Program-made: the position numbers and the translations under genes | Part shown: positions 1 through 13,084 of the stretch, one piece after another | Position numbering within the stretch: the first letter of the stretch is position 1 | How the letters are laid out: the number at the start of each line of letters is the position of its first letter | Source of the DNA: Penicillus capitatus | Taxonomy: Eukaryota > Plantae > Chlorophyta | DNA: 64,000 nucleotides | Assembly: GCA_965649825.1 (NCBI GenBank) | Contig: OZ287709.1 | Span: 372,001 to 436,000, forward strand | Direction of reading: 5' to 3' | Notes under the pieces: generated by a model | What the model was told of the DNA's origin: nothing | Databases searched by the model: none | Seen by the model: the letters and a program-made list of their open reading frames with translations, nothing else

Positions 1-438
1 GTTTGTAGGAAGAACAGAATTATTGCGAGCTTCATGATTCACAGACTATATTCATCATACCATGTTTTCCGTCGGCAATGTCCTCGCGAGACGTCGGTCT
101 GCTAGAGAATTGTCTTATTTCACATCAGCTGCTTTCAAACCAATCGTATAAAAAACTGTGACTCAAGTGGACAGACCACAAGCTTCATGTAGACAAAAAC
201 ATCAGATGAAGTTGAAATATCGCCACGAGAAAGAAGAAAGTTAACCCCATCAAAGAGTACCTTATCCCTGACTTTAACCAGCTTGCTTTCCACTTTGACA
301 GAAATGCTTTACGGCAAAAACCTACGATGTCAAAGAAGGAGAAGAAAGCTCAAGAAATCCCACATATGATGGTAAAATAAAAACGGATCGTGCAGTTGTT
401 GATGTTGTGGTGAAAGAATATGGAAATCGGAAGAGCCA

Positions 439-1569
439 CTATTTCTGCTCTGTCTTTTTGTTGCCGCTGCCAATTTGTTTCTTCAACAATGCATCCACTT
501 CTTCCTGCTTGGCAAAGCGGCCTTTGATGCGTGGACGATTCTCGGCATAGGCTTTACGCGATGCGTAACGGATCCTGTGTCCCCACGTCCGTCTCTTACG
601 TTTTTCTAGATATCTATCACACAAAGAGGCAGCTTCGCATCAGCTCCCTTTCAGACATCGGATGCAGATCAGACCTTGCTACTTTTGCCTTTCGAATGAG
701 GTTCTGTTCAGCAGTGAGCTTTCGAGGAGGGATTGGAACAGTGTTGCTGGGTTGTGCCACTTCGACGGCGGGAGTCATGTCGGGGTGCACATTCACTCGA
801 TAATGTTGCACAGCTGTCGCAGGAGCAAACGTGCCCGATGGACAACATGACGAGGCGGCAAACACACAGCAACCATTCATCCAAGGCCTTTCTATCCCTA
901 AACCATACATACTCCATCACTTACAGGTATTATGCAAAAACGAACAAACATTACCTGCATAGTGGCTTGTTATTGTCGGGCACATTGGATGCTCCTCTTT
1001 GACATATCTCACTTCCTCTCTCTCCTGTTCCTCTTCTTTCATCCAGCCAACATTCGATTTTGCATCCTGCAACGGGAAAACGATCTTTGTGATGTGACCG
1101 ACGGTATGAGGGCGCACATGGAGTGAGCAAACAAGAGTATCATCGTAGTTGGTCGGGTCATCCAAGCAACCCAATACATTATCAGAAAAAAGACAAACAT
1201 CCGGCAGTGTCGTGCAGATGTCATGGTTCGTATGCAAACTACGCCGCGGAAAGAGCGCAGATGAAGGCATTGCTGCCTCGTTCTCCCCCATCTCGGAGCA
1301 TCTCTCAGACGTATTGTCCAGAGGACTCACGCTACTGTCGGTACCGCTTGAATCCTGCGCGACATGTCTGCCTTTTTCAATCATCCGGTGCTTCGTTCTA
1401 CCTGACGGCAATACGTTGCACTGCTGTTTGTCTTGGACAGACAGGCGCCACGCGCATAGAACTCGTTTTCCGTTGCAGGCGCTACTGAAACGATGTCACC
1501 ATTATCGTAGCTTCCGTTCTGAAGCGACGCATGAAACTCATCAGGCGGCCACTTCAGGCGCTGCTGCAT
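439..1569 (-). CDS. CCT-domain (CONSTANS-like/CMF) protein, spliced; 5' end uncertain
   Basis: A GT-AG intron at ~613-666 joins RKAKVAR to [35 protein letters not shown], a full CCT motif. No B-box recognised upstream. Confidence 0.85.
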
Positions 1570-1726
1570 GAACGTCGGTTGAAACGCAGAAGCGCTATCT
1601 TCGAGTCCCACACACTCATACGACGAAAGCAGACCGTATCCAGTGTCTAATTCAGTATTTAGCCACATCGATGCCGTCTGTAGGTCAAACAGGAGATCCC
1701 ACGATCCAGAGCGACAGACGCAAAAG

Positions 1727-2729
1727 ATGGAATGCGCAGGAGTTCTCTTTCGATGTTTTGATGTGACAGTTCCAACCTTCGACGGATTCTTTCGATGGCG
1801 TCGGTTGCGCGCGCGTCTCGAGCAAGATGTCCTGACAGCCACAGTCACGCGGCCTCGCGTCTTGTGCCCGCGGCGTTGTTTCCAGTACATGTCTCTCCGC
1901 CGCATCGGAAACGACCAATCGCGTTGCGCTATGGCATTGACCGTTACGATGCAAGCGATTCGAGACACCTATCGCCTCGGGGTCGCGAGGTCGTGATCTC
2001 GGGCGCCGTTTCGGAAGGACTCCCGGTCTACGAAATAGCGGCGGGAGTTGGCAGTCGTTTCTCATTCGTTTATCTCGGCACTTTGGTCTCCATGCTGCTC
2101 GGTGCGGCCTACCTCGTTGTACGGCAAGTCCTCGTCCGAGTGGAAATGGACGAGGCGATGAAGCGATTGGTCGACAGCATTCGAGCAGGAAATGCCACAA
2201 GCGAGGTCACTCCTCTCACTCTCCTCTAGACTGACATCTCACACTTTTGATAGATCTATTATGAGTTGGCAGCCATCCTGATCCGCAAAAAACTCTATAT
2301 CCAAGCAATCAACAATCTCGAGAAATCCATCAATCTCTGGGAAGAGGAAGATGTGGAACTGGCACAGGTCGAGCAGAAATCGCGAAGTGACGTGACACAT
2401 GTTTGACGATGCAGGTGTACAATGCCTTGGGTTATAGCTACTACTGCCTTGAGAAAAACGATCAGGCACTCACGAATTACAAAAAGGCAGTCGCGCTGCG
2501 TCCGAACTACGTCTCGGCTTGGAATAATCTCGGAGATGCACACGAGCGTGCTGGCCAATGGAAGTGCGATCTGTGACATGCCTCTCTCCCTCGCCATCAC
2601 ATTTTTGCACTTAGGGAAGGCTACGAAGCGTACAAGCAGACACTGAAATACGATGCCGTGAACAAAGTGGCCCTAGAACGCGCGAACTATTTAAAACAAA
2701 AATGCGAACGATTGGGCATTCCGGCTTGA
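1727..2729 (+). CDS. PYG7: Chloroplast TPR protein of the Ycf37/PYG7/CGL71 family (PSI assembly), spliced
   Basis: TM segment YLGTLVSMLLGAAYLVVRQVLVR, then YELAAILIRKKLY..LAQ|VYNALGYSY..AWNNLGDA..YDAVNKVA TPR repeats. The last exons are too short for the ORF track. Confidence 0.85.
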
Positions 2730-2812
2730 ACCATAACCATCCCGTACGAACGCCATTTTGACATGTTCTGTTCATGACACAGTTTTCCTTTAACGTCTGT
2801 CCGTCCGTTTGT

Positions 2813-4279
2813 TCAGCTACTCGTCTCTGAGGCACTGGGTGTCGATGCAGGTGCGGGTTCCAGTTGCGACACGGACGTCGGTGGGGTGGCGGCGGCGGAC
2901 GGCGGCTCCTTTTCTTCAGACGTCTGCTGCTGCGCTTGTAACGTCAACTCATTCATCTTCATCATAAACTGCATGACTTCGGGATCGTTGACGTACTTGC
3001 TCATATTGGCAGGATTCTGTTGCAGGTCCACCACAGCCTGCATCACATTTGGCTTCTGCATCATTGCCACCACTTCAGGCTCGTTCATCAGTTTCTTCAT
3101 CAGCACGTCGGGACTGATGTTCATCGTCTCTAACTGTCTTTTCATATCGGATTGTCCCGCCTGTGTTTTGAACCCCTGCACCACAGACGGGTACAGAAAT
3201 TGTTGCAAGGCGATTTAGAGACTTTGATCTGTTGGAGAAGCTGAGGCGTCATCATTGACTTGAACTGCTCTTTCACCATTGGCGACGACATGAGGTTCTC
3301 TAGCATTTCGGGACTTCTCATATTCTCGGGGAGAAACTGCACGAGAGATTCGCGCATTTGTGGATCTCGTAACATATCGAACATGTAGTCCACTGCCTCG
3401 TCAGGGTTCTCCACTACAGGCTGCTCTGTCGTCTGCTCCATCGGAACGTCTTGGAAAAACGAAGGCGATGCCGGTGGCGGCGAGGGCGTCGGCGGCATGT
3501 CCGTTTTCACGGCAGAAGGCGTCTGAACTCCGTTCTTCTGTGGATTTGACTCCTTTGACCCGGCTGGATTGAAAGGAGAGACAGGAGGCGGCGAAGGGGG
3601 AGGTGACGTCGAGGTTTTGGGGGACATCTGAGGTGCCGCTGCTGCTGGGGTAGAAGGTTGAGCCGTCGTGTCATAAGCAGGAGGCGTTGCCATTCCGAAA
3701 GGATTGGCAGATGGCGGTACGGCTCCTCCAAAGGGTGGTGGCGGTGGTGTTCCCTGGGCATTGGACATCTGACTCATCATCTGCTTCATCATCATCTCCG
3801 TCATCGCTTCCTTCGGATGACTGACGAAATTCATGATCCGAGTGAAAACTGTCGCCAACAGCATGCCCACCATGATCCATACCCAGGGAGGCAAGACATT
3901 GGCCGGTTCGACAGTGTACTGAGGAGGCTGGACGGGAAAGACGGGAGGTCCCGTGGGATAGGCTTCGTGGTAGTGCCTCACAGGCGGAGTGGCGACGGGC
4001 AGTTGCGATGGATCTTCAGAAGCGACGGCAATGTCGGCATCGACCATCGCCTAGATGAACGTTCCTTAGGCGGAAAGGCACGAGACAGGTGTTTACCGTT
4101 TCTGCGGCAGGTTCATGGACTTTCTCTTCCGTCGAGCGTCGTTTGGCCTGAGCATAGAGGAACGGACGTCGAGCGGGACGCAGGGGTCTGTTTGTTCGCG
4201 TCAGGAAAAAGTGTCGCTGCGAAGGTGTCCTTCGAACGGCGACGCAGGGGCACTGACGTAGTAAGGCCGAGTGGATCAT
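2813..4279 (-). CDS. TIC40: Chloroplast inner-envelope translocon co-chaperone TIC40, spliced
   Basis: Transit-peptide-like N-terminus, TM segment PWVWIMVGMLLA followed by MMMKQMMSQM, Pro-rich linker, MLRDPQMRESLVQFLPENMRSPE, and C-terminal STI1 domain (LMNEPEV..QNPANMSKYVNDPEVM). Confidence 0.9.
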
Positions 4280-4853
4280 CGCCGCGCAAAACTCAGTGGT
4301 CTGGCCGAACAAGTGATGACGTGTCGTGCACGAGACCACGCACTGTGTGACGTTGCAATGCGATTCTTGCAAAGGGCAGCGATGAAAACCCCGCGCGTGC
4401 CACCGTGTCTGCTGCGCATGTCAGCAAAGACGATCGGTATACGGCGCGTTCTCTACGGTTGCGTATCTACGGTACATGTCCAAAGCAGCCTTACAAACGG
4501 ACAATCGAACAACATTGATATCGGTTCCGCGTTCTCGCTGACTCATCGCTCGAAATATAAACCACGCATTTTTCACGAGAAATCGACCAGATGCCCCAAT
4601 TCAGAAAACTAAAAAGCAAAGAAGATCGTCTTGATGATAAGCAATGCCATGCGAATTCAGAAAATGGTGGATCTCTAATCCTCCGGGCCTCGGACGGGAG
4701 ATGCCCAATGAAACGTCCGCATCAGTCGATGGACGGATGAATGATCCAAATCGCATCAACTGCACTTGGTGATTTGTCATTAAGAAAAGGCGGCCGGCAC
4801 ACGCAGCACAATGTGTACATTATTAGAAGCGAGTGAGTGAATGGGCAACCCAT

Positions 4854-7800
4854 CTATTCTCGATCAGCAGCCATCGCATCCAGTGTATTAGCAATGTGCA
4901 TCGCTAATTTTCGTGCCTCCTAAAACAATAGAGACGATGGTGGGCGATTCGTAAGCGAGAGGATGAGTCACTTGTGAAGCTGCAGCAGCTGCATCTGCTT
5001 TGCTCTTGGCTTCCCTAATCCCCGTTTGAATTTCCCCTTCTGCCCTCCAATGCTCCTCAGCGCGCGCAGAGCCTTCTCGAGCAGACTACAGACAGATATC
5101 AGGGATAGAGCAACGCCAACGAGAACGAACGAACTTCGCGCGCTGTTCGGCAGGCAACCCAGGCTGTCTCTACTTTCTTGGCTATCTCCTCTGGCCACCG
5201 TGGATCTTGCGCTTCATTATTTGTCAATCCTTGAACCCATTTTGGCTTTCCTTCTACCCATTCACCTGCCCACATTTCGCCTAGAGCACCACGTCACGCA
5301 TCGCTCCAATGCAACTCATCCCTCTGCATTTCCTGCCTGTTTCAATTGTATAGATACACCAGCCATGCTTCTTCCCTTGGACCCATTGTCCTTCGTACTT
5401 CTGACCGGTTGCAAAAATGTAAATGCCATATCCGTGCGGAATATCACATTCGTATTCGCCCAGGTATCGATCACTGTTTGGGAAGCAGTAATAACCGTAG
5501 CCGTGTCTCTTGCCGGCCAGGTAGTCTCCAATGTAATTGCTCTCTTCTGTGCATTGCTGCATACCTCTCCCTTCGCGCAGTCCATGTTTCCACTGTCCTT
5601 CGTAATAGTCGCCATTGTAATAGCGACAGGCACCCCAGCCATCCCGCATGCCGTTTGTGTATTCGCCACGATATGTCGAGCCTCGAGCAAAGGTCTCATT
5701 TCCAGCACCATCATAGACACAGTTGTTCCATTGTCCCTCGTACCGCCCCTCGTTGGCAAATGTATAGACTCCGTTGCCCGACATGCGATCGGCAACGAAT
5801 TCTCCTTCGTAAACATCGCCATTGACGAATTGATAGACGCCTTCTCCATTCTTCTTGCCACCCTGATAGCGTCCTTTGTAGATATCTCCATTGCGCAGGC
5901 GGCGAATTTGATAGTCGCCTCCTTGAGTTGAATTTGAAGAAGGAAGGCCTCCAGCCATCTTCATGATCACGGTCTCTTCGACCTTGACAGGACGGGAAGT
6001 GCCATTCGAACTTGCTTCGCTCATCGATGTCTGACGGCCTTCGGATGTCTTGGCAATGCGGGAGGGGGCATAGGAGTCACGTGCCAGTGCAAGATCCATG
6101 GCTGCCTGTGCCGATCCGATCTTGCGGAGAGCTCCGTCGACGGCACGCATGTCACTCAACCGTTTCTGATGCTCTGTCATACTCAGTGCACAGCTTGTAG
6201 GAATTGGATTTCGGGTTTCCATCTCGGTTAATCGATGTGCACAGGTTTTGAACTCAGTCTCGAGTCTTTGGATCTGCCCAACGCAATCAGCAAATCCACG
6301 GAATGCATGATGCCATTCCTCAGGCGACTGCTTCTGGATACCTTCCAAATTATCCATCAGCAAGCCATTATGCCTGTCAAACAGACACAGTGTTCACTAG
6401 ATCGTATGGGGCGATGGAAACCTGAGAAGTGTGTTGATCACATCTTTCATGCTTCGAAGTTTTCCTCGGTAAGCATAGTTATCGTTATCTGTCCCTAGAT
6501 CCTCCAAGAGGGAACTAAAGTTCGGAATTGCATCTAACAGAGCATCTAAGCAACGTCTGACGGCTAATAATCCTTCTTCTGCCACTTCTTCTGGGGCCGT
6601 TGCACTAAAGAGTAACATCAAGGGTAGGAAGAGTGGGATGGATATAGAGGTTGGCACGGGGGAGTGTGTTGGCGAACCGACTCGGCAGGGAGAGGGTTCT
6701 CCACAGCGCGGAGATTTACGGAATAGACAGACGACTCTGCTTCAGAGCGCCGTGACGTCTTGGGACTGGGAGGCGGTGTACCACGAGGTCCAGAAACCCG
6801 ACGCAATGGAGATCCTCCCACAGGCGCAGGAGATCTTGATGTGCCTGTTCAGCATAACAGGTCGTACAATGAAGACCCTGTCTGATAGGCAGTCTCTCTA
6901 CTTGGGATGGCTGTCTTCGAGCGATGATGCGATATGGACAGTTCTGTCGAATCTTGCATCGTTCGCCTCGATCCTTGCATCTCACGCATGGCCTATCATT
7001 TTAGAGAGTGAGACAAAATGAGCAAGGCAGTTTGCATCCACTGCTGTGAGTTCCGTTGCGTAGTTGCGAGAATCGACCGATGCCGTTCGGGTGTGTGGCC
7101 GCGTCCGTGAGCTTCGTGATGTATACGATCCAGAAGGGCCAGGTGTTCGCGATGCCCTTGAACGTCTTCCTGCTTCGATGTAGCCATCGTAGGAATGATC
7201 ATAATCATGCTTGCTCCCTAGATAGCAACACCCACGTCCATACCACGCAACAAAGAGCGCCGCTGCGTACCTTCTGGTTTGCCGTAGATATTGAAATGCG
7301 AATGCATCCAGTAGGGCATAGGAATACGGTCTGTTCCACCTTTGACGCTCCGTAACCGGCGTTCACAAGGATCATACGTTGGCAACGGCTTCCTTTCTGT
7401 AGCACCCATGAAACACGTCCAAAAGCAAATGATGTCTGCGATGAGGACTTTTAAGGTATTTATGAAGAAATTGAAGCAGCTCTAGTGTTTCGCTTGGAGA
7501 TCCCCGCATGAGTTTCTGCACAGCCATGTCCTACACCACAGACACATCTTTAGCAAAACACACAGATGTCGGCATCTGTGCTGTGCTGACCCTGTTGATT
7601 TGTGCATCGGCAAAGACGTTTTGCAAAATCTTGTAGTTCGGAACAAACTCATACTCTTCTCTTGCATGGAAATTCACCTAAACGTAAATGACTCAGCATC
7701 CAGTCCATCGCGACGGGGTCACTCGACGTACTCTGTGAATCGGGACGAGTTCTTCAAAGTAAGCGTCCATCATTTGACAGAAAACCGCCCCAGACGCGAA

Positions 7801-8018
7801 CTGTCAATGAGCGGTTGGGTATCGTATGTTGGAAGTCGAACGCGTCTCACTTCTTCGAGTCGTGTAATGCCGAGCATAAGTGTTTGGTTGACCCAGTCTA
7901 TCAGTTGACTTTTGCTCGGGTGATAAATACCCGAAGTCACAGACGACGTTGCTGAGTGCCGTCCCACTCGGCCCTTTGCTAAGGGCTGAATAACACCGCC
8001 GCCTTCGGAGTCCGACAT
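4854..8018 (-). CDS. Multi-exon protein: EB1-type calponin-homology domain + S/P/R-rich linker + syntaxin-Habc-like helices + 8-9 MORN repeats
   Basis: Spliced CH: LIDWVNQTLMLGITRLEE|FASGAVFCQMMD..|VNFHAREEYEFVPNYKILQ..YDPCERR. Successive in-frame ~47-60 nt GT-AG introns link it to the MORN block (YKGRYQGGKKNGEG etc., 5281-5900). The two domains are secure; the fusion is inferred. Confidence 0.7.
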
Positions 8019-8128
8019 CACCTCACGCAAGAAAGATACGTGCAGAGCAAACAAACAAACAAACACAACGCGGCGAGGCACACGCGTCGAGAACTGCAAA
8101 AAGAGCCAAATGCACGTTATCCGTCTCA

Positions 8129-9858
8129 ATGGCCCATTTTCTAGTAACTTTCACAGCGATGCGCCGACTTGTAAGGCACTACCTTGCTGTTTCTTATAGT
8201 CTTATCTTCAGCAGCTTCGCGTCGGCGATGCTTCCGTCAGATCCCCAAGCGTATCGACATCGACTCGTTATTATCGGTGGTGGACTGGCAGGGCTCTCAT
8301 GTGCCCATGAAGCCTCGCGTCAGTGGGAAAGGGCGTATAGTGGACGTCCGTTCGAGATCTACGTCATTGATAAGGAGCCCCGTCTCGGAGGGAACAGTGT
8401 CAAGGCGAGTAGCGGCATTAATGCCGTCGACGGGAAGGAACCGGACGCCGTGGCGTCTTTTATCAAAGATACACGACTCAGTGGTGGTGGACTGAGCGAC
8501 GATGATCTGATTCAAACGCTCGTAACCCGAAGCGGCGCGGCGATTGAGTTTCTCGAATCGTTTGGGGTGGAATTGAGTGGTTTGACGCAACTCGGTGGAC
8601 ATTCGACGAGTCGCACCCGATTCAATCCCGCTGGACCGAACGTCGGATTTGCGATCATGCAAAAACTCATGGCGGCGGCGGAATCTGATCCGAAAATCGA
8701 AATTATCAAGAGTGCTAAAGTGACGGGCATTGAGATGCTCAATAACCGGCATCCCAGATACGATGTCCTATTCTCCAGGGAAACGTGTAAGTAGCTGCTG
8801 TCATGTCACAATGAGATCGTTCATCCGTCGCGTGTAGATCGAGCACATGTGGATACACGTGCATTTGTGATGGCGACAGGAGGATTTGGAGCAAACAAGA
8901 CATTGCTGGAGAAGTTTGCACCCGAAACGGCGCCATATGCCACGACAAACGGCCCCTGGTCAACAGGTTGCTCCTCGGCCGTTTCTACAGACCGATGTGA
9001 CGTGTTTCGTGTCCAGGGGATGGTCTGGAATTGGGAAAAGAACTTGGAGCGCGATTGGTTCACTTGGAAGAAGTGCAACTGCATCCAACAGGCTTCGTTG
9101 ATCCAAAAGATCCAGATGCAGGTCCTGTCAAGATCTCTTCTGCATGACGCCATTCATGCATGAACATCTCTAGGGAGCAAGATCTTGGCGGCGGAAAAGT
9201 TGAGAGGGTGCGGTGCTATTCTGATGAACATGGAAGGGCATCGTTTTGTGGATGAGCTCAATCGACGGGATCACGTTTACAGCAAGCTCTCAGAACAGAC
9301 GGGTTTCGCTCCTCGATGCTCTGACGGGATTCGGAACGGTCTGCTGCTGTCACAGGGGAGAAGGCGTGGTTGCTGTTATCTGCAGCCGGCGGCGAAAAGT
9401 TCAATGTCAGCCAAATGGGTTTCTACATGGGCCGTGGACTGATCAAGACCTTGGATTCCATTGACGCTATGTCTGAACATACCAAAGTTCCGGCCGCCAC
9501 GCTGAAAAAAGAGATTGAGACGTACAACGCAGCGGCGAAGACGAACAACGATGCATTCGGCAAGACAACGTTTCCCACAGACTTCGACATCAATGGTCCT
9601 TTCTACATGGCAATGATCACACCTGTGGTGCATTACACGATGGGCGGTTTGAGAATCAACACGGACAGTCAGGTGCTTAAAGAAGGCGAAGGCATAGCTC
9701 TACCGGGCATCTATGCTGCCGGAGAGGTGTCAGGAGGATTGCACGGAAAGAACCGCCTCGGTGGAAATTCATTACTGGATTGTGTTGTGTTCGGACGTCA
9801 GGCCGCCAACCATGCGATTCATTACATCGCAGAAACGAATGTTCATGAGGAGCTGTAG
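8129..9858 (+). CDS. Soluble FAD-dependent fumarate reductase (Frd1/Osm1, flavocytochrome c flavin-subunit family), spliced
   Basis: IIGGGLAGL FAD motif, GGNSVKASSGIN, LGGHSTSRT, QLHPTG, EKLRGCGAIL, VHYTMGG, GLHGKNRLGGNSLLDCVVFG; the protein ends HEEL. Confidence 0.95.
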
Positions 9859-10168
9859 GCGAACGAATGATAAAAACGAATCCTGTAAACAGTCTGCGAT
9901 ACGTTGGAAGGGATAAACACTTGTGACGCCCTGTCGATGCACCGGAATGCGTCGGTGACTGGCTCGAGAGGGCCATCGATGTCGGGGCTTTGGCAGTCTT
10001 TTTGCGTTATGTTTGAAGATCAAGTGAAGTGCGTACAGCGACGGTTCCGGTTTAAATGTCTGCGTGTCTTTGATCGACACGCACGTCTATCGTTATGTGT
10101 CGAAAAAAGAAGCCGTTCGAGCAGTACGTGTCTTATTTGGAAATAAAAAACGTTCGAAAGGGATCACT

Positions 10169-11233
10169 CTAAGTCAACTGCAGCACCATTGTGGTCAATG
10201 CCACGCTCCACCTCCAGTACAATACTGCCATAGCGAGAAGAATGAGACACGAGACACATTCAGATGTAGAGTCCGACAGCAACGGAGTAAATGAATTTCT
10301 GTCGGTCCTACGTCGGGTCATCAGAAAACGCACTCTCGCTGACCTTTCCGATTTCCATAGAGCAAAAGAAACATATCCCGCTGAGAAAAACACCATGAGA
10401 AAGGCAGACAGATGCAGACATGGAATCTTGATCGGAGGCGTCGTTTCATCGAAGACGCCGATCGTCGATCTTAGGAATGCGTAACAGAATTCGAAGATGG
10501 CATCGACGACGGCATCAATTTTGTAGAACACAGAAGCCCCTCTCGATTCTACGATACGTTCGCACAACACAGGTGCTCTGCCGAAGAGAAAGATGAGATA
10601 AGTGATGAAATGCGTCGGCAGGTGGTCCTCGAATTTGAGAGTGATGCCAAAAGCGTACGGAAAATTGCCCAGTGTTTCGGTTACCATCAGGAATTGCACT
10701 ATCACGACAATGGGGTTCGGGACCAAAGCAAACATCCACTTCTGGGAGTCATTTGTCACGCTGCCCACCAAAGCTATACAAATTCTACAGATGCGTTCGA
10801 ACAGGATCTCTTGGATAAGGTGACATGACCTGAAGATGATAGACATGTAACGACGCAAGCGCAGAACGCGCTGGGTGGATGAAGCATGATACACGTGCCA
10901 CATGCCAACGGTTAATGCGCTGATGCCGAACAATGGCAGAGTAGGGAGTAACCGAAACTCCTGTTCCACGACTGCCTTGATGGAAATGGAGAACAGGACG
11001 ATAGTAGTGACAAAGAAGAATCGGAGGTCGCCCGGACGGTACATCTGTTCGTAAGCATAGCGTTCGAATTCGGATTCGAGGGCGGCGTCACGGAACGTAA
11101 GCAGCAGTGGACGCATGACTGCGTCCGTAGCTAAACGCATCGCGAAGAAGACGTGCGTGACCTCTCTGAGACGTTTTATGTGATGACTAATGTCGAAACG
11201 CGCTATCACATCATCATCTCCTCTAAGAAGCAA
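10169..11233 (-). CDS. Hypothetical multi-pass membrane protein (possibly spliced)
   Basis: 354-aa ORF with several hydrophobic segments, bracketed by LTFRDAALESEFERY and WKSERSARVRFL. No catalytic domain recognised. Confidence 0.55.
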   Translation of the reverse strand: MLLRGDDDVIARFDISHHIKRLREVTHVFFAMRLATDAVMRPLLLTFRDAALESEFERYAYEQMYRPGDLRFFFVTTIVLFSISIKAVVEQEFRLLPTLPLFGISALTVGMWHVYHASSTQRVLRLRRYMSIIFRSCHLIQEILFERICRICIALVGSVTNDSQKWMFALVPNPIVVIVQFLMVTETLGNFPYAFGITLKFEDHLPTHFITYLIFLFGRAPVLCERIVESRGASVFYKIDAVVDAIFEFCYAFLRSTIGVFDETTPPIKIPCLHLSAFLMVFFSAGYVSFALWKSERSARVRFLMTRRRTDRNSFTPLLSDSTSECVSCLILLAMAVLYWRWSVALTTMVLQLT

Positions 11234-11330
11234 CCAACAACCAAAACTGGCTAACGGCTTTTCCTACGGTAAGGTGCGATATTCCGCTACTGGGGCCGCC
11301 CGAGGCGGTCGATCCACAGAACGAACACAC

Positions 11331-12100
11331 CTACACAAAAGCACAAGGGCGAGGCGGAGGGCTTACTGATTGGCGTCTCTGTGGACGCGCTTTCATCCGC
11401 CCTATCCATCGGATAACAGACCTTGGCGGCACCGCGGCTTCACGTCTTCTTGAATCATTGGGCGATTCCACGTCTTCGACATGCATGCCCCGCATCCCAC
11501 AAGAGCCGCGGCGCACTGGACTGCGTCTGACGCGTCTTGGGATGAATTGTCTTGTCCTCTCGGCTTCATTGAATATCGAGAACCTACAAAACACAAACGA
11601 AATTACTAAAACCTAAACTCACAGCTGCAGGGATTCTCACCATATGGGACGACGGTCCATCTGAGGTTTGATCGCTGTGAGCTTGCGCACCTCCGCATCA
11701 CTTCTTAACCGTAGGCGCTTTGTTTTCCCTGTCGAGTCCCTGCATCGCATAGGTTCTCGTCTCTGCAGAATACACCGCAGAAAGCGCTTGCCTTTGTGAA
11801 TTGGTGACGCTGAGGCATTCACTGCCGTCTGTGCTCACGAAGTTGCGTTGGGGGCATGCCGTCTTCGGCGACCTGCTTTGGGTCTCTCGAATGCCAATGC
11901 CGCCGACGTGGTGGACAAATTCGGCGTTAGCTTGGCGTCCTACGTTCGAAGGAATTTACCTTCAGGATTTGGCGCGAAAACGGCTCGGTCCACGTTTCCG
12001 CGTTCTCGTGCCCGACCACCAGGCTTTTGTCTTCGCTGTTACCTGCAAAAGCAACCTAGAAACGCAAACTTATCACCAAGGGAACACGCGGCAACTGCAA
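11331..12100 (-). CDS. Possible hypothetical spliced basic protein; boundaries uncertain
   Basis: A GT-AG intron joins ORF 11637-11822 to ORF 11331-11594 in frame (MDRRPIW|FSIFNEA). No recognisable motif. Confidence 0.25.
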
Positions 12101-13084
12101 CATACCTTGCGGTGAAGTCGACCGACGGAAGTTGCCTTCGGAGTCCGAACACCTGCAAACGCGAAGAACTTCGCACACGAAGATAACGCATCAGTGTCGT
12201 CGACAGGTCAAGTGAAACTTGCCTATCGAACTCCAATGTTATGCGTCCGGATCTGCGCCACTCGGAGAATAGAAAGAGAAGCACAGGAAACGAGAAAGAC
12301 GAAAACGCCAACTCCATCCGTCTTTTATGGGCTGAGAAGTTCACGATGTGACGTCGCCTGACGTCAGACAACGTCGGAGGAAAGGGCGAATACAGGCGGA
12401 GCAGGAGCGTTTCGGAACGACTTGCTGACACACGTTTCTCAAAAACATCGAGTCCAACTGCCGATCGATGGCGTTTTAATGCCAGCAAGGCACATCGCAA
12501 TGCTCACCGCACCTGGCCGAAGGGCATGCGCATCTCATCAGACCGCCTGTCACATCAGAACCTACTGATCCCGCAAAAAGCTATGCTCTGTATCATGCCT
12601 GTTTGTCTAACCGATACCTATAGATTTCACATAGAAATGTGAAGCTTATTCTTGGCAAACAAGACTTAGATGTCCTCGATTTCGTCCTCCGATGGACTAT
12701 GGCCTTGAACAGAAAGCATCCGTTTCTTGCAGGTGGCTAACTTCGTTGATGCACATATCTGTTTTTGTTACTTTTCATTAAAGAATTCAGCACCCTCGCG
12801 TCGCGCTCTTTCACTCTCAATGCACATGACCTACAGATCGTTTGTGATTAAAAACAAAACTGTACTGATCATGTCCCTATCCACGGCAATCCCATCTTTG
12901 ATGCAACTGGTGTCGCAAGAAGTCAATGTTCTGACAGGATGGTCAAGGAATTCTGCTCAAACGTCGATTCCCGGCCGAGTTCGAGACAAGCCGCCATTGT
13001 TTGCCTGTCTCTGCATTTGCGCCATCTACAATGCGTTCTGGATGGCGTCTATTCGGGAGGTGACACTAGGTGACGTCAGTTCGG

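Follow-up and report, generated by a model that had tools for sequence, protein, structure and literature searches.

The 64,000-nt stretch analysed here (the window; contig OZ287709.1 of the chlorophyte Penicillus capitatus) carries between positions 8018 and 4854, on the minus strand, a gene which appears only as fragments in the program-made list of open reading frames (ORFs). An earlier reading of the DNA without database searches (the sequence-only reading) had noted this fragmentation and proposed that the pieces are joined by introns. We read the minus strand from 8018 to 4854 and assembled it into exons and introns. The result is one ORF of 2532 nt and 843 codons, built from 13 exons, which make up 80% of the gene body and are separated by 12 introns of 48-60 nt each. 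Eleven introns have GT-AG boundaries and one (5336..5281) has GC-AG boundaries. The start (ATG at 8018) and the stop (TAG ending at 4854) proposed earlier are both exact in the rebuilt model, and the five proposed junctions KPE/GSKHD, ELTA/AMREM, IP/STSRS, HTP/PATAPEE and LLR/HNGLL correspond to in-frame GT-AG introns of 48-57 nt. Newly added are four introns inside the calponin-homology (CH) domain and three towards the 3’ end, among them the GC-AG intron. The predicted product is a soluble protein of 843 amino acids (aa) with six parts, namely a CH domain of the EB type, a conserved motif with a basic linker, a Habc-like helical bundle, a short variable linker, nine MORN repeats and an Ala-rich tail.

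Several relatives allow the model to be checked. Colinear full-length homologs exist in Caulerpa lentillifera (g8771.t1, 833 aa, 58% identity, and its paralog g6306.t1, 797 aa) and in Bryopsis sp. KO-2023 (BSKO_10883/GMH42961.1, 817 aa). The Caulerpa and Bryopsis proteins align unbroken over every junction of the window gene, for example RLEE/FASGAV, LIR/HNxLL and IETG/EMWAGEW, and at the junction created by the GC-AG intron 10 the orthologs read IETG/E(M/Q)WAGEW with no gap. Orthologs also begin with MSDSG or MSDAG at an ATG matching that of exon 1. In the Bryopsis genome (L002) the exon ends match introns 1, 2, 3, 5, 10 and 11 of the window, so that at least six positions are shared; these were taken from the boundaries of high-scoring segment pairs and are accurate to about one residue.

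A genomic contig of another relative (L001; Logan ERR4592244_3151839, with the ortholog at 123..2459) has an intron where the window has intron 3, followed by an uninterrupted ORF (nt 251-1888) covering aa 109-674 of the window protein, which is the stretch interrupted in the window by introns 4-9. In L001, a single reading frame therefore runs from the last part of the CH domain through the linker and the middle domain into the MORN array, most of which it includes. This ORF runs through the position of intron 5, where L001 has no intron, and so answers the possibility raised by the sequence-only reading that the transcript ends at the in-frame TAG at 7218. The L001 ortholog, which has none of the window introns 4-9, carries an intron at a different site inside the MORN array. 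Intron loss and gain within this gene family is rapid.

The closest comparison is offered by L003, an 814,653 bp contig of the ENA metagenome assembly ERZ26696514, which is 87-91% identical to the window between 388 and 11220 and has the same gene order. Positions 1..12225 of this contig correspond to window 388..11220, about 10.9 kb, and represent an environmental sibling lineage of the window’s organism, the genes of which are called in ENA as prokaryote-style ORF fragments. In a global alignment of the gene, the exons are 94.0% identical (2380/2532) without a single gap column. The introns are 80.0% identical and hold all nine in-gene indel runs, the lengths of which (4, 2, 4, 1, 4, 4, 1, 14 and 2 nt) include no multiple of 3. 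With exons accounting for 80% of the gene body, the chance of all nine indels hitting introns is about 0.2^9. The exon mismatches are distributed over codon positions 1/2/3 as 18/9/125 (chi-square about 164, 2 degrees of freedom), and no exon, not even the low-complexity linker exons 6-8, lacks the excess at third positions. The projected L003 coding sequence is an intact ORF of 843 codons with 24 amino-acid differences from the window. The gene is under purifying selection.

The most diverged segment in this alignment is intron 5, which is 54% identical to L003 while its flanking exons are 94-95% identical. Its donor is GT in the window and GC in L003, and intron 10 has a GC donor in both. 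GC splice donors thus seem to be tolerated in the lineage of the window. In introns 6 (6993..7041), 8 (6605..6657) and 10 (5281..5336), the identity to L003 is 94-98%, compared with the intron average of 80%; this could be due to chance in short segments or to embedded regulatory signals. The exon structure with the evidence for each part is as follows (mismatches to L003 are given per codon position 1/2/3):

4854..8018, minus strand: whole coding region, 13 exons, 843 aa, ATG at 8018, TAG at 4856-4854 (ortholog colinearity; purifying-selection signature against L003)
7851..8018, minus strand: exon 1, aa 1-56, N-terminal tail and first part of the CH domain (model; intron position common to Bryopsis)
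7732..7800, minus strand: exon 2, aa 57-79 (model; intron position common to Bryopsis)
7591..7677, minus strand: exon 3, aa 80-108 (model; comparison with L001 and Bryopsis)
7449..7530, minus strand: exon 4 (model; L003 alignment)
7271..7396, minus strand: exon 5, end of the CH domain, YDPCERR and family-specific motif (model; orthologs; L003 alignment)
7218..7270, minus strand: intron 5, 53 nt, GT-AG, with the in-frame TAG at 7218 (comparison with L003, Bryopsis and L001)
7042..7217, minus strand: exon 6, basic Ser/Arg/Pro-rich linker (mismatches 0/0/11)
6902..6992, minus strand: exon 7, linker (mismatches 1/0/9)
6658..6844, minus strand: exon 8, linker (mismatches 1/1/13)
6422..6604, minus strand: exon 9, first half of the syntaxin-like domain (model; orthologs; ENA ORF P0008, 95% identical)
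5337..6373, minus strand: exon 10, remainder of the syntaxin-like domain, short linker and MORN repeats 1-8 (model; Pfam; repeat register)
5281..5336, minus strand: intron 10, 56 nt, GC-AG (orthologs, L003, Bryopsis)
5135..5280, minus strand: exon 11, partial ninth MORN repeat, then the first part of the C-terminal helical region (model; orthologs)
4972..5085, minus strand: exon 12 (model; mismatches 0/0/9)
4854..4919, minus strand: exon 13 with the stop codon (model; L003 alignment)

Because of the colinear homologs, the continuous ORF in L001, the intron positions in Bryopsis and the pattern of substitutions and indels against L003, we conclude from these sequence comparisons that the minus strand between 8018 and 4854 is one real protein-coding gene of a green alga. 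An additional promoter inside the gene is possible. At the level of the protein, the following parts were delimited (genomic coordinates include introns):

7362..7922, minus strand: EB-type CH domain, aa ~33-147 (PDB sequence search; Pfam CH 5.8e-5)
7275..7361, minus strand: family-specific conserved motif, aa 148-176, RRLRSVKGGTDRIPMPYWMHSHFNIYGKP (many invariant columns among five orthologs)
6589..7271, minus strand: basic Ser/Thr/Pro/Arg-rich linker, aa 178-334, 157 residues, net charge +10, 38% S+T+P (coding by third-position bias)
6058..6588, minus strand: syntaxin-N-terminal-like helical domain, aa 335-495 (Pfam Syntaxin_2; syntaxin-12 Habc; AlphaFold2; Foldseek)
5237..5922, minus strand: array of nine MORN repeats, aa 541-750 (Pfam MORN 7.4e-28; strict 23-residue register)
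4854..5236, minus strand: Ala-rich C-terminal region, aa 751-843, assumed to be helical (kept in every full-length ortholog)

The N-terminal CH domain is, by its sequence, clearly of the EB type. With aa 1-178 as a query, the only significant matches among the PDB sequences (E<0.01) were chains of the EB family, namely Bim1 (1.6e-23), EB1 (1.1e-20), EB3 (4.9e-20) and Mal3 (2.5e-18), each over about 120 residues up to the YDPxxRR end. The generic Pfam CH profile scored 23.7 bits, slightly below its cut-off, and CH_2 reached 0.003, also below its own. Scanned against Pfam at E<=1, the full protein gives MORN, CH, Syntaxin_2 and CH_2 only, and the EB1 C-terminal domain (EBH, PF03271) is not among these, in agreement with the EB1-type CH domain lacking EBH that had been proposed from the bare sequence. 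Like the EB1/MAPRE proteins (human EB1/EB3, yeast Bim1, S. pombe Mal3), the window protein combines the CH homology with a basic residue at the position of EB1 K89 (Arg108; Arg is found in the four full-length sequences covering this position) and with a basic, Ser/Pro-rich linker. Unlike them, it has neither the EBH coiled-coil dimerisation domain nor the acidic EEY/F tail, since it ends with ...TLDAMAADRE, and about 670 further residues of unrelated domains follow the CH domain. Moreover, the loop corresponding to EB1 K100-N104 is replaced family-wide by an invariant PSE (G-x-P-S-E in all members but Bryopsis).

Another difference from EB proteins is the added 29-residue motif directly after the CH domain, which has no counterpart in them. 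It is strongly conserved, reading KGGTDRIPMPYW in the window and three orthologs; the two remaining orthologs have KGGIDRIPLPYW and KGGTDRIPTPSW, which differ by one or two substitutions. It is recognisable in a looser form, RR..S.KGG...[IL]P.P, in the distant members P0010, P0015 and P0024. Between the window and L003 there are no differences in aa 151-177. In the adjoining basic linker a TAIP motif (aa 263-266), resembling the EB-binding SxIP, was considered and rejected: it is TAMP in L003 and absent in the orthologs.

About 160 aa long, the middle domain most likely consists of a three-helix bundle of the syntaxin N-terminal (Habc) type and a fourth helix after it. In Pfam, Syntaxin_2 (PF14523) was the only recurring family, matching 10 of 14 isolated domains of the family, while the next best profile matched 2 of 14. 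The Caulerpa paralog (29.0 bits) and Bryopsis (28.0 bits) pass the curated cut-off of 26.5; Myrmecia (25.6), the window (22.7) and other orthologs (22.3, 22.1 and 21.9) lie below it. A profile of the family found the nuclear magnetic resonance structure of the syntaxin-12 N-terminus (2dnx), with the E-value improving from 0.0017 with five sequences to 6.4e-5 with 14 sequences. The alignment covers residues 17-120 of the chain and places the LGTDxDS junction of the family on LGTKQDS of syntaxin-12. AlphaFold2 modelled the domain from the 14-sequence alignment with a predicted local distance difference test (pLDDT) value of 93.3 and a predicted template-modelling (TM) score of 0.87; its long helices span domain residues 2-30, 40-73, 85-112 and 134-156. 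A first run with five close orthologs, superseded by this one, had given a pLDDT of 65 and Foldseek matches to designed bundles only. When the model was compared with the PDB by Foldseek, syntaxin-1 from the Munc18 complex ranked first (4jeh_B, probability 0.85; 3c98_B, 0.84), and the Habc domain of syntaxin-1A (1ez3_B) was matched with a probability of 0.82, a root-mean-square deviation of 3.8 A over 114 columns and a TM score of 0.59 per target length. This ranking suggests that the fourth helix may be placed like the H3 helix of closed syntaxin.

The domain resembles the Habc domains of syntaxin-7/12/Pep12 and closed syntaxin-1 in its three helices of about 30 residues and in the LGT..DS-like junction between helices A and B. 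It differs from syntaxins in its fourth conserved helix after a Pro-rich loop and in its position in the middle of a soluble protein, and the statistical support for the likeness is marginal. A SNARE motif (PF05739) was found neither in the whole protein at E<=1 nor in the isolated domain at E<=10, and there is no transmembrane segment, the highest 19-residue Kyte-Doolittle mean being 1.01, inside the CH domain. Because both the SNARE motif and a hydrophobic anchor are missing, the protein is certainly not a SNARE.

The MORN array follows the pattern YxGxWxxGxxxGxG. The sequence-only reading had counted eight or nine repeats; we found nine, which keep an exact 23-residue register over aa 541-747 and the last of which is degenerate and has no GxG end. 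The closest relatives with a solved structure are MORN1 of Toxoplasma, Plasmodium and Trypanosoma (2e-34 to 3e-30), followed in the PDB by axonemal MORN proteins, a PIP5K and junctophilins. MORN1 shares with the window protein the uninterrupted 23-residue repeats (2e-34), but consists of MORN repeats only, whereas the array described here forms the C-terminal half of a protein with a CH domain. On their own, the last 98 aa had no match in the PDB. When they were searched together with the last two or three repeats, only the alignments to junctophilin-1 and -2 ran on, to about residue 822. At the level of sequence, the possible likeness to junctophilin consists of eight repeats with a degenerate ninth, followed by a long Ala-rich segment. 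Junctophilin differs in its joining region, divergent region and transmembrane anchor in the endoplasmic or sarcoplasmic reticulum, while the window protein has no hydrophobic segment. In junctophilin, the MORN sheet is supported from behind by a helix of 60 residues, the Ala residues of which face a “glycine valley” (PMC8916002), and MORN1 proteins dimerise tail-to-tail via their C-terminal repeats (PMC7725318). By analogy, we take the MORN half to be a rigid module for protein interaction and perhaps for dimerisation, and membrane contact is possible.

To find further family members, an exhaustive profile search with the middle domain over 1.84 billion representatives was more informative than a search with the full-length protein, which was saturated by MORN words and gave four hits; another profile search gave seven. 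The middle-domain search detected 27 proteins at E<=0.001, 13 of them at E<=1e-10, and therefore the family is small. It was found only in core chlorophytes, where the named sources span Ulvophyceae, Trebouxiophyceae and Chlorophyceae, and the closest named relatives of the window gene are in the siphonous Bryopsidales Caulerpa and Bryopsis. The order CH domain, middle domain, MORN array and tail recurs in Caulerpa (two paralogs), Bryopsis, [Myrmecia] bisecta (WJX72_007667; KAK9820225.1/A0AAW1QFN8; 921 aa) and an unplaced protein of 974 aa (P0010). In P0010 Pfam detects all three domains and in P0024 the CH and middle domains. In the [Myrmecia] protein it detects the middle domain and the MORN repeats, and an EB-like CH domain is visible in the sequence. 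The transcript-derived protein P0018 of Flechtneria rotunda (564 aa, annotated as a complete ORF) has the middle domain and MORN repeats but no CH domain. Since such CH-less members exist, the Habc-MORN half can stand alone. The chlorophycean-type members can be explained in two ways, by a class without the CH fusion or by the use of an internal start.

The orthologs already in databases (GMH42961.1, g8771.t1, g6306.t1 and KAK9820225.1) resemble the window protein in domain order and length, with 47-58% identity in the bryopsidalean ones, and all are unnamed “hypothetical protein” entries. The sequence-only reading had not recognised the architecture. In this respect, no description of the domain combination was found among 8 million full-text papers, but the sequences themselves are not new, as hypothetical proteins of this type had been deposited (GMH42961.1, KAK9820225.1). 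Each module by itself is known, and their combination is conserved in green algae.

The gene is arranged head-to-head with its upstream neighbour, from which it is separated by a short spacer:

8019..8128, no strand: 110-bp intergenic region between the ATG at 8018 (minus strand) and the ATG of a FAD_binding_2 gene at 8129 (plus strand)

The divergent gene (8129..8794, plus strand) encodes a flavoprotein of the fumarate-reductase/succinate-dehydrogenase type. L003 has kept the head-to-head arrangement, with a spacer about 90% identical, which suggests that a very compact promoter serves both directions. An ORF for a Pro-rich protein of 301 aa (3142..4047, also on the minus strand) is located downstream, with a Met-rich, repeat-like C-terminal part and a sub-threshold match to RPN13_C (UCH-binding; E 4e-4, 20.9 bits with a cut-off of 39.3). 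No tRNA genes were found in the 64,000-nt window, and the upstream flank of the Bryopsis locus, the sole flank returned, showed no synteny with the window.

What could such a protein do? We see an even chance that it is a microtubule-anchored adaptor, possibly dimeric. The CH domain and the basic linker would attach it to microtubules, either to their ends or to the lattice. The MORN sheet together with the C-terminal region would form a rigid platform for protein-protein interactions, which may take over the dimerising role of the EBH coiled coil, with possible contacts to acidic membranes. The syntaxin-like bundle would offer a binding surface of the type recognised by SM (Sec1/Munc18) proteins, tethers or SNARE helices. 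In this way the protein could tie microtubules to a partner associated with membrane trafficking or with an organelle.

Several observations speak against this proposal. The departure of the CH domain from EB proteins at the K100-N104 loop means that end recognition, or even microtubule binding, may differ. In addition to P0018, several chlorophycean-looking ORFs (P0012, P0016 and P0022) start at the middle domain and have no CH domain. Membrane binding was not found for TbMORN1 (PMC7725318) and is questioned for junctophilin (PMC8916002), and these same structural studies call into question the assumption of lipid contact by the MORN repeats, on which the membrane half of the microtubule-to-membrane linker proposed by the sequence-only reading would depend. 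With regard to the middle domain, each single line of syntaxin evidence is individually weak. Foldseek gave E-values of 0.18-0.95, a designed helical repeat protein reached 1.6e-5 with the family profile that had found syntaxin-12, and the window copy is below the Pfam cut-off. An hhalign comparison with vertebrate STX12 N-termini gave a probability of 11% (P=0.0027), using a narrow STX12 alignment, as the word-indexed search had returned close STX12 relatives only. The resemblance to a Pep12-type (syntaxin-7/12) Habc domain suggested by the sequence-only reading is thus favoured by Pfam, the profile search and the AlphaFold/Foldseek ranking, but not by the weak E-values, the hhalign result and the comparable score of a designed protein. 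On balance, we consider it fairly probable that the domain is a genuine Habc-type domain.

The main rival to the adaptor proposal, although we regard it as unlikely, is that the protein belongs to the structure of the flagellar apparatus, where it would be docked on stable microtubules of the axoneme, basal body or rootlet instead of linking dynamic cytoplasmic microtubules to membranes. Algae carrying the family have flagellate stages, single CH-type domains are also found among ciliary microtubule binders, and many of the solved MORN matches are axonemal (RSPH1, RSP1, RSP10, FAP266, FAP207, FAP227, MORN3, MORN5 and kinesin-MORN). However, the MORN1 proteins, which match the array best, are not axonemal, the CH domain belongs to the EB type (1e-23) and not to the SPEF1/CH_2 type (CH_2 0.003, below cut-off), and the syntaxin-like domain has no obvious axonemal role. 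With still lower probability, the CH domain could be repurposed, so that it no longer binds microtubules but another partner, and the protein would be a general helical/MORN scaffold. The invariant PSE in place of the EB1 loop, the new conserved motif after the domain and the CH-less version of the family fit such a change of partner. It is harder to reconcile with the identity to Bim1 and EB1, which spans the whole domain including YDPxERR, with the positive charge retained at the K89 position and with the basic nature of the adjoining linker, as in many microtubule binders.

Least probable of all, and by our judgement very improbable, is that the locus has two transcription units or makes two products, with an EB-like CH protein that terminates in intron 5 and the Habc-MORN part as a protein of its own, and that the fusion is an artefact of reading introns into the sequence. 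Retention of intron 5 would indeed end the frame at the TAG at 7218, and the Flechtneria protein, the ORF of which is annotated as complete, has its start at the middle domain. Yet the linker exons 6-8, which follow this intron, contain no indels and show the third-position pattern 0/0/11, 1/0/9 and 1/1/13 against L003, intron 5 itself is the fastest-evolving segment (54% identity to L003), the equivalent region of L001 is one continuous ORF, and the gene models of Bryopsis, Caulerpa and Myrmecia are all fused.

Returning to the microtubule-anchored adaptor, it is tempting to speculate about a special form of it, although we consider this a long shot. The protein could be a chlorophyte-specific, microtubule-bound “syntaxin mimic”, in which the Habc bundle and the fourth helix would imitate closed syntaxin and either recruit an SM protein (Sec1/KEULE-, Vps45- or Vps33-like) or a tether to microtubules or hold it there, with dimerisation or cargo binding by the MORN repeats and the helix instead of EBH. 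If true, microtubule arrays would be coupled directly to sites of membrane fusion, for example in cytokinesis, wound plugging or organelle transport in giant siphonous cells.

The identification of this gene is of interest for several reasons. It provides a validated model of 13 exons and 12 introns, one of them GC-AG, for a gene which is fragmented by ORF-based callers. To our knowledge, EB-type CH domains are almost always found in the canonical EB architecture, and Habc domains are almost always part of SNAREs. The occurrence of an EB-type CH domain and a Habc-like domain out of their context, together with a MORN array, is therefore a natural experiment on what these modules can do as stand-alone units. 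Should the CH domain bind microtubules, we would have here an EB-derived binder in which the cargo-recruiting EBH domain was swapped for hard-wired partner domains. Last but not least, if the Habc-like bundle binds trafficking proteins, the family would point to a direct link between microtubules and membrane fusion which is specific to the core chlorophytes.

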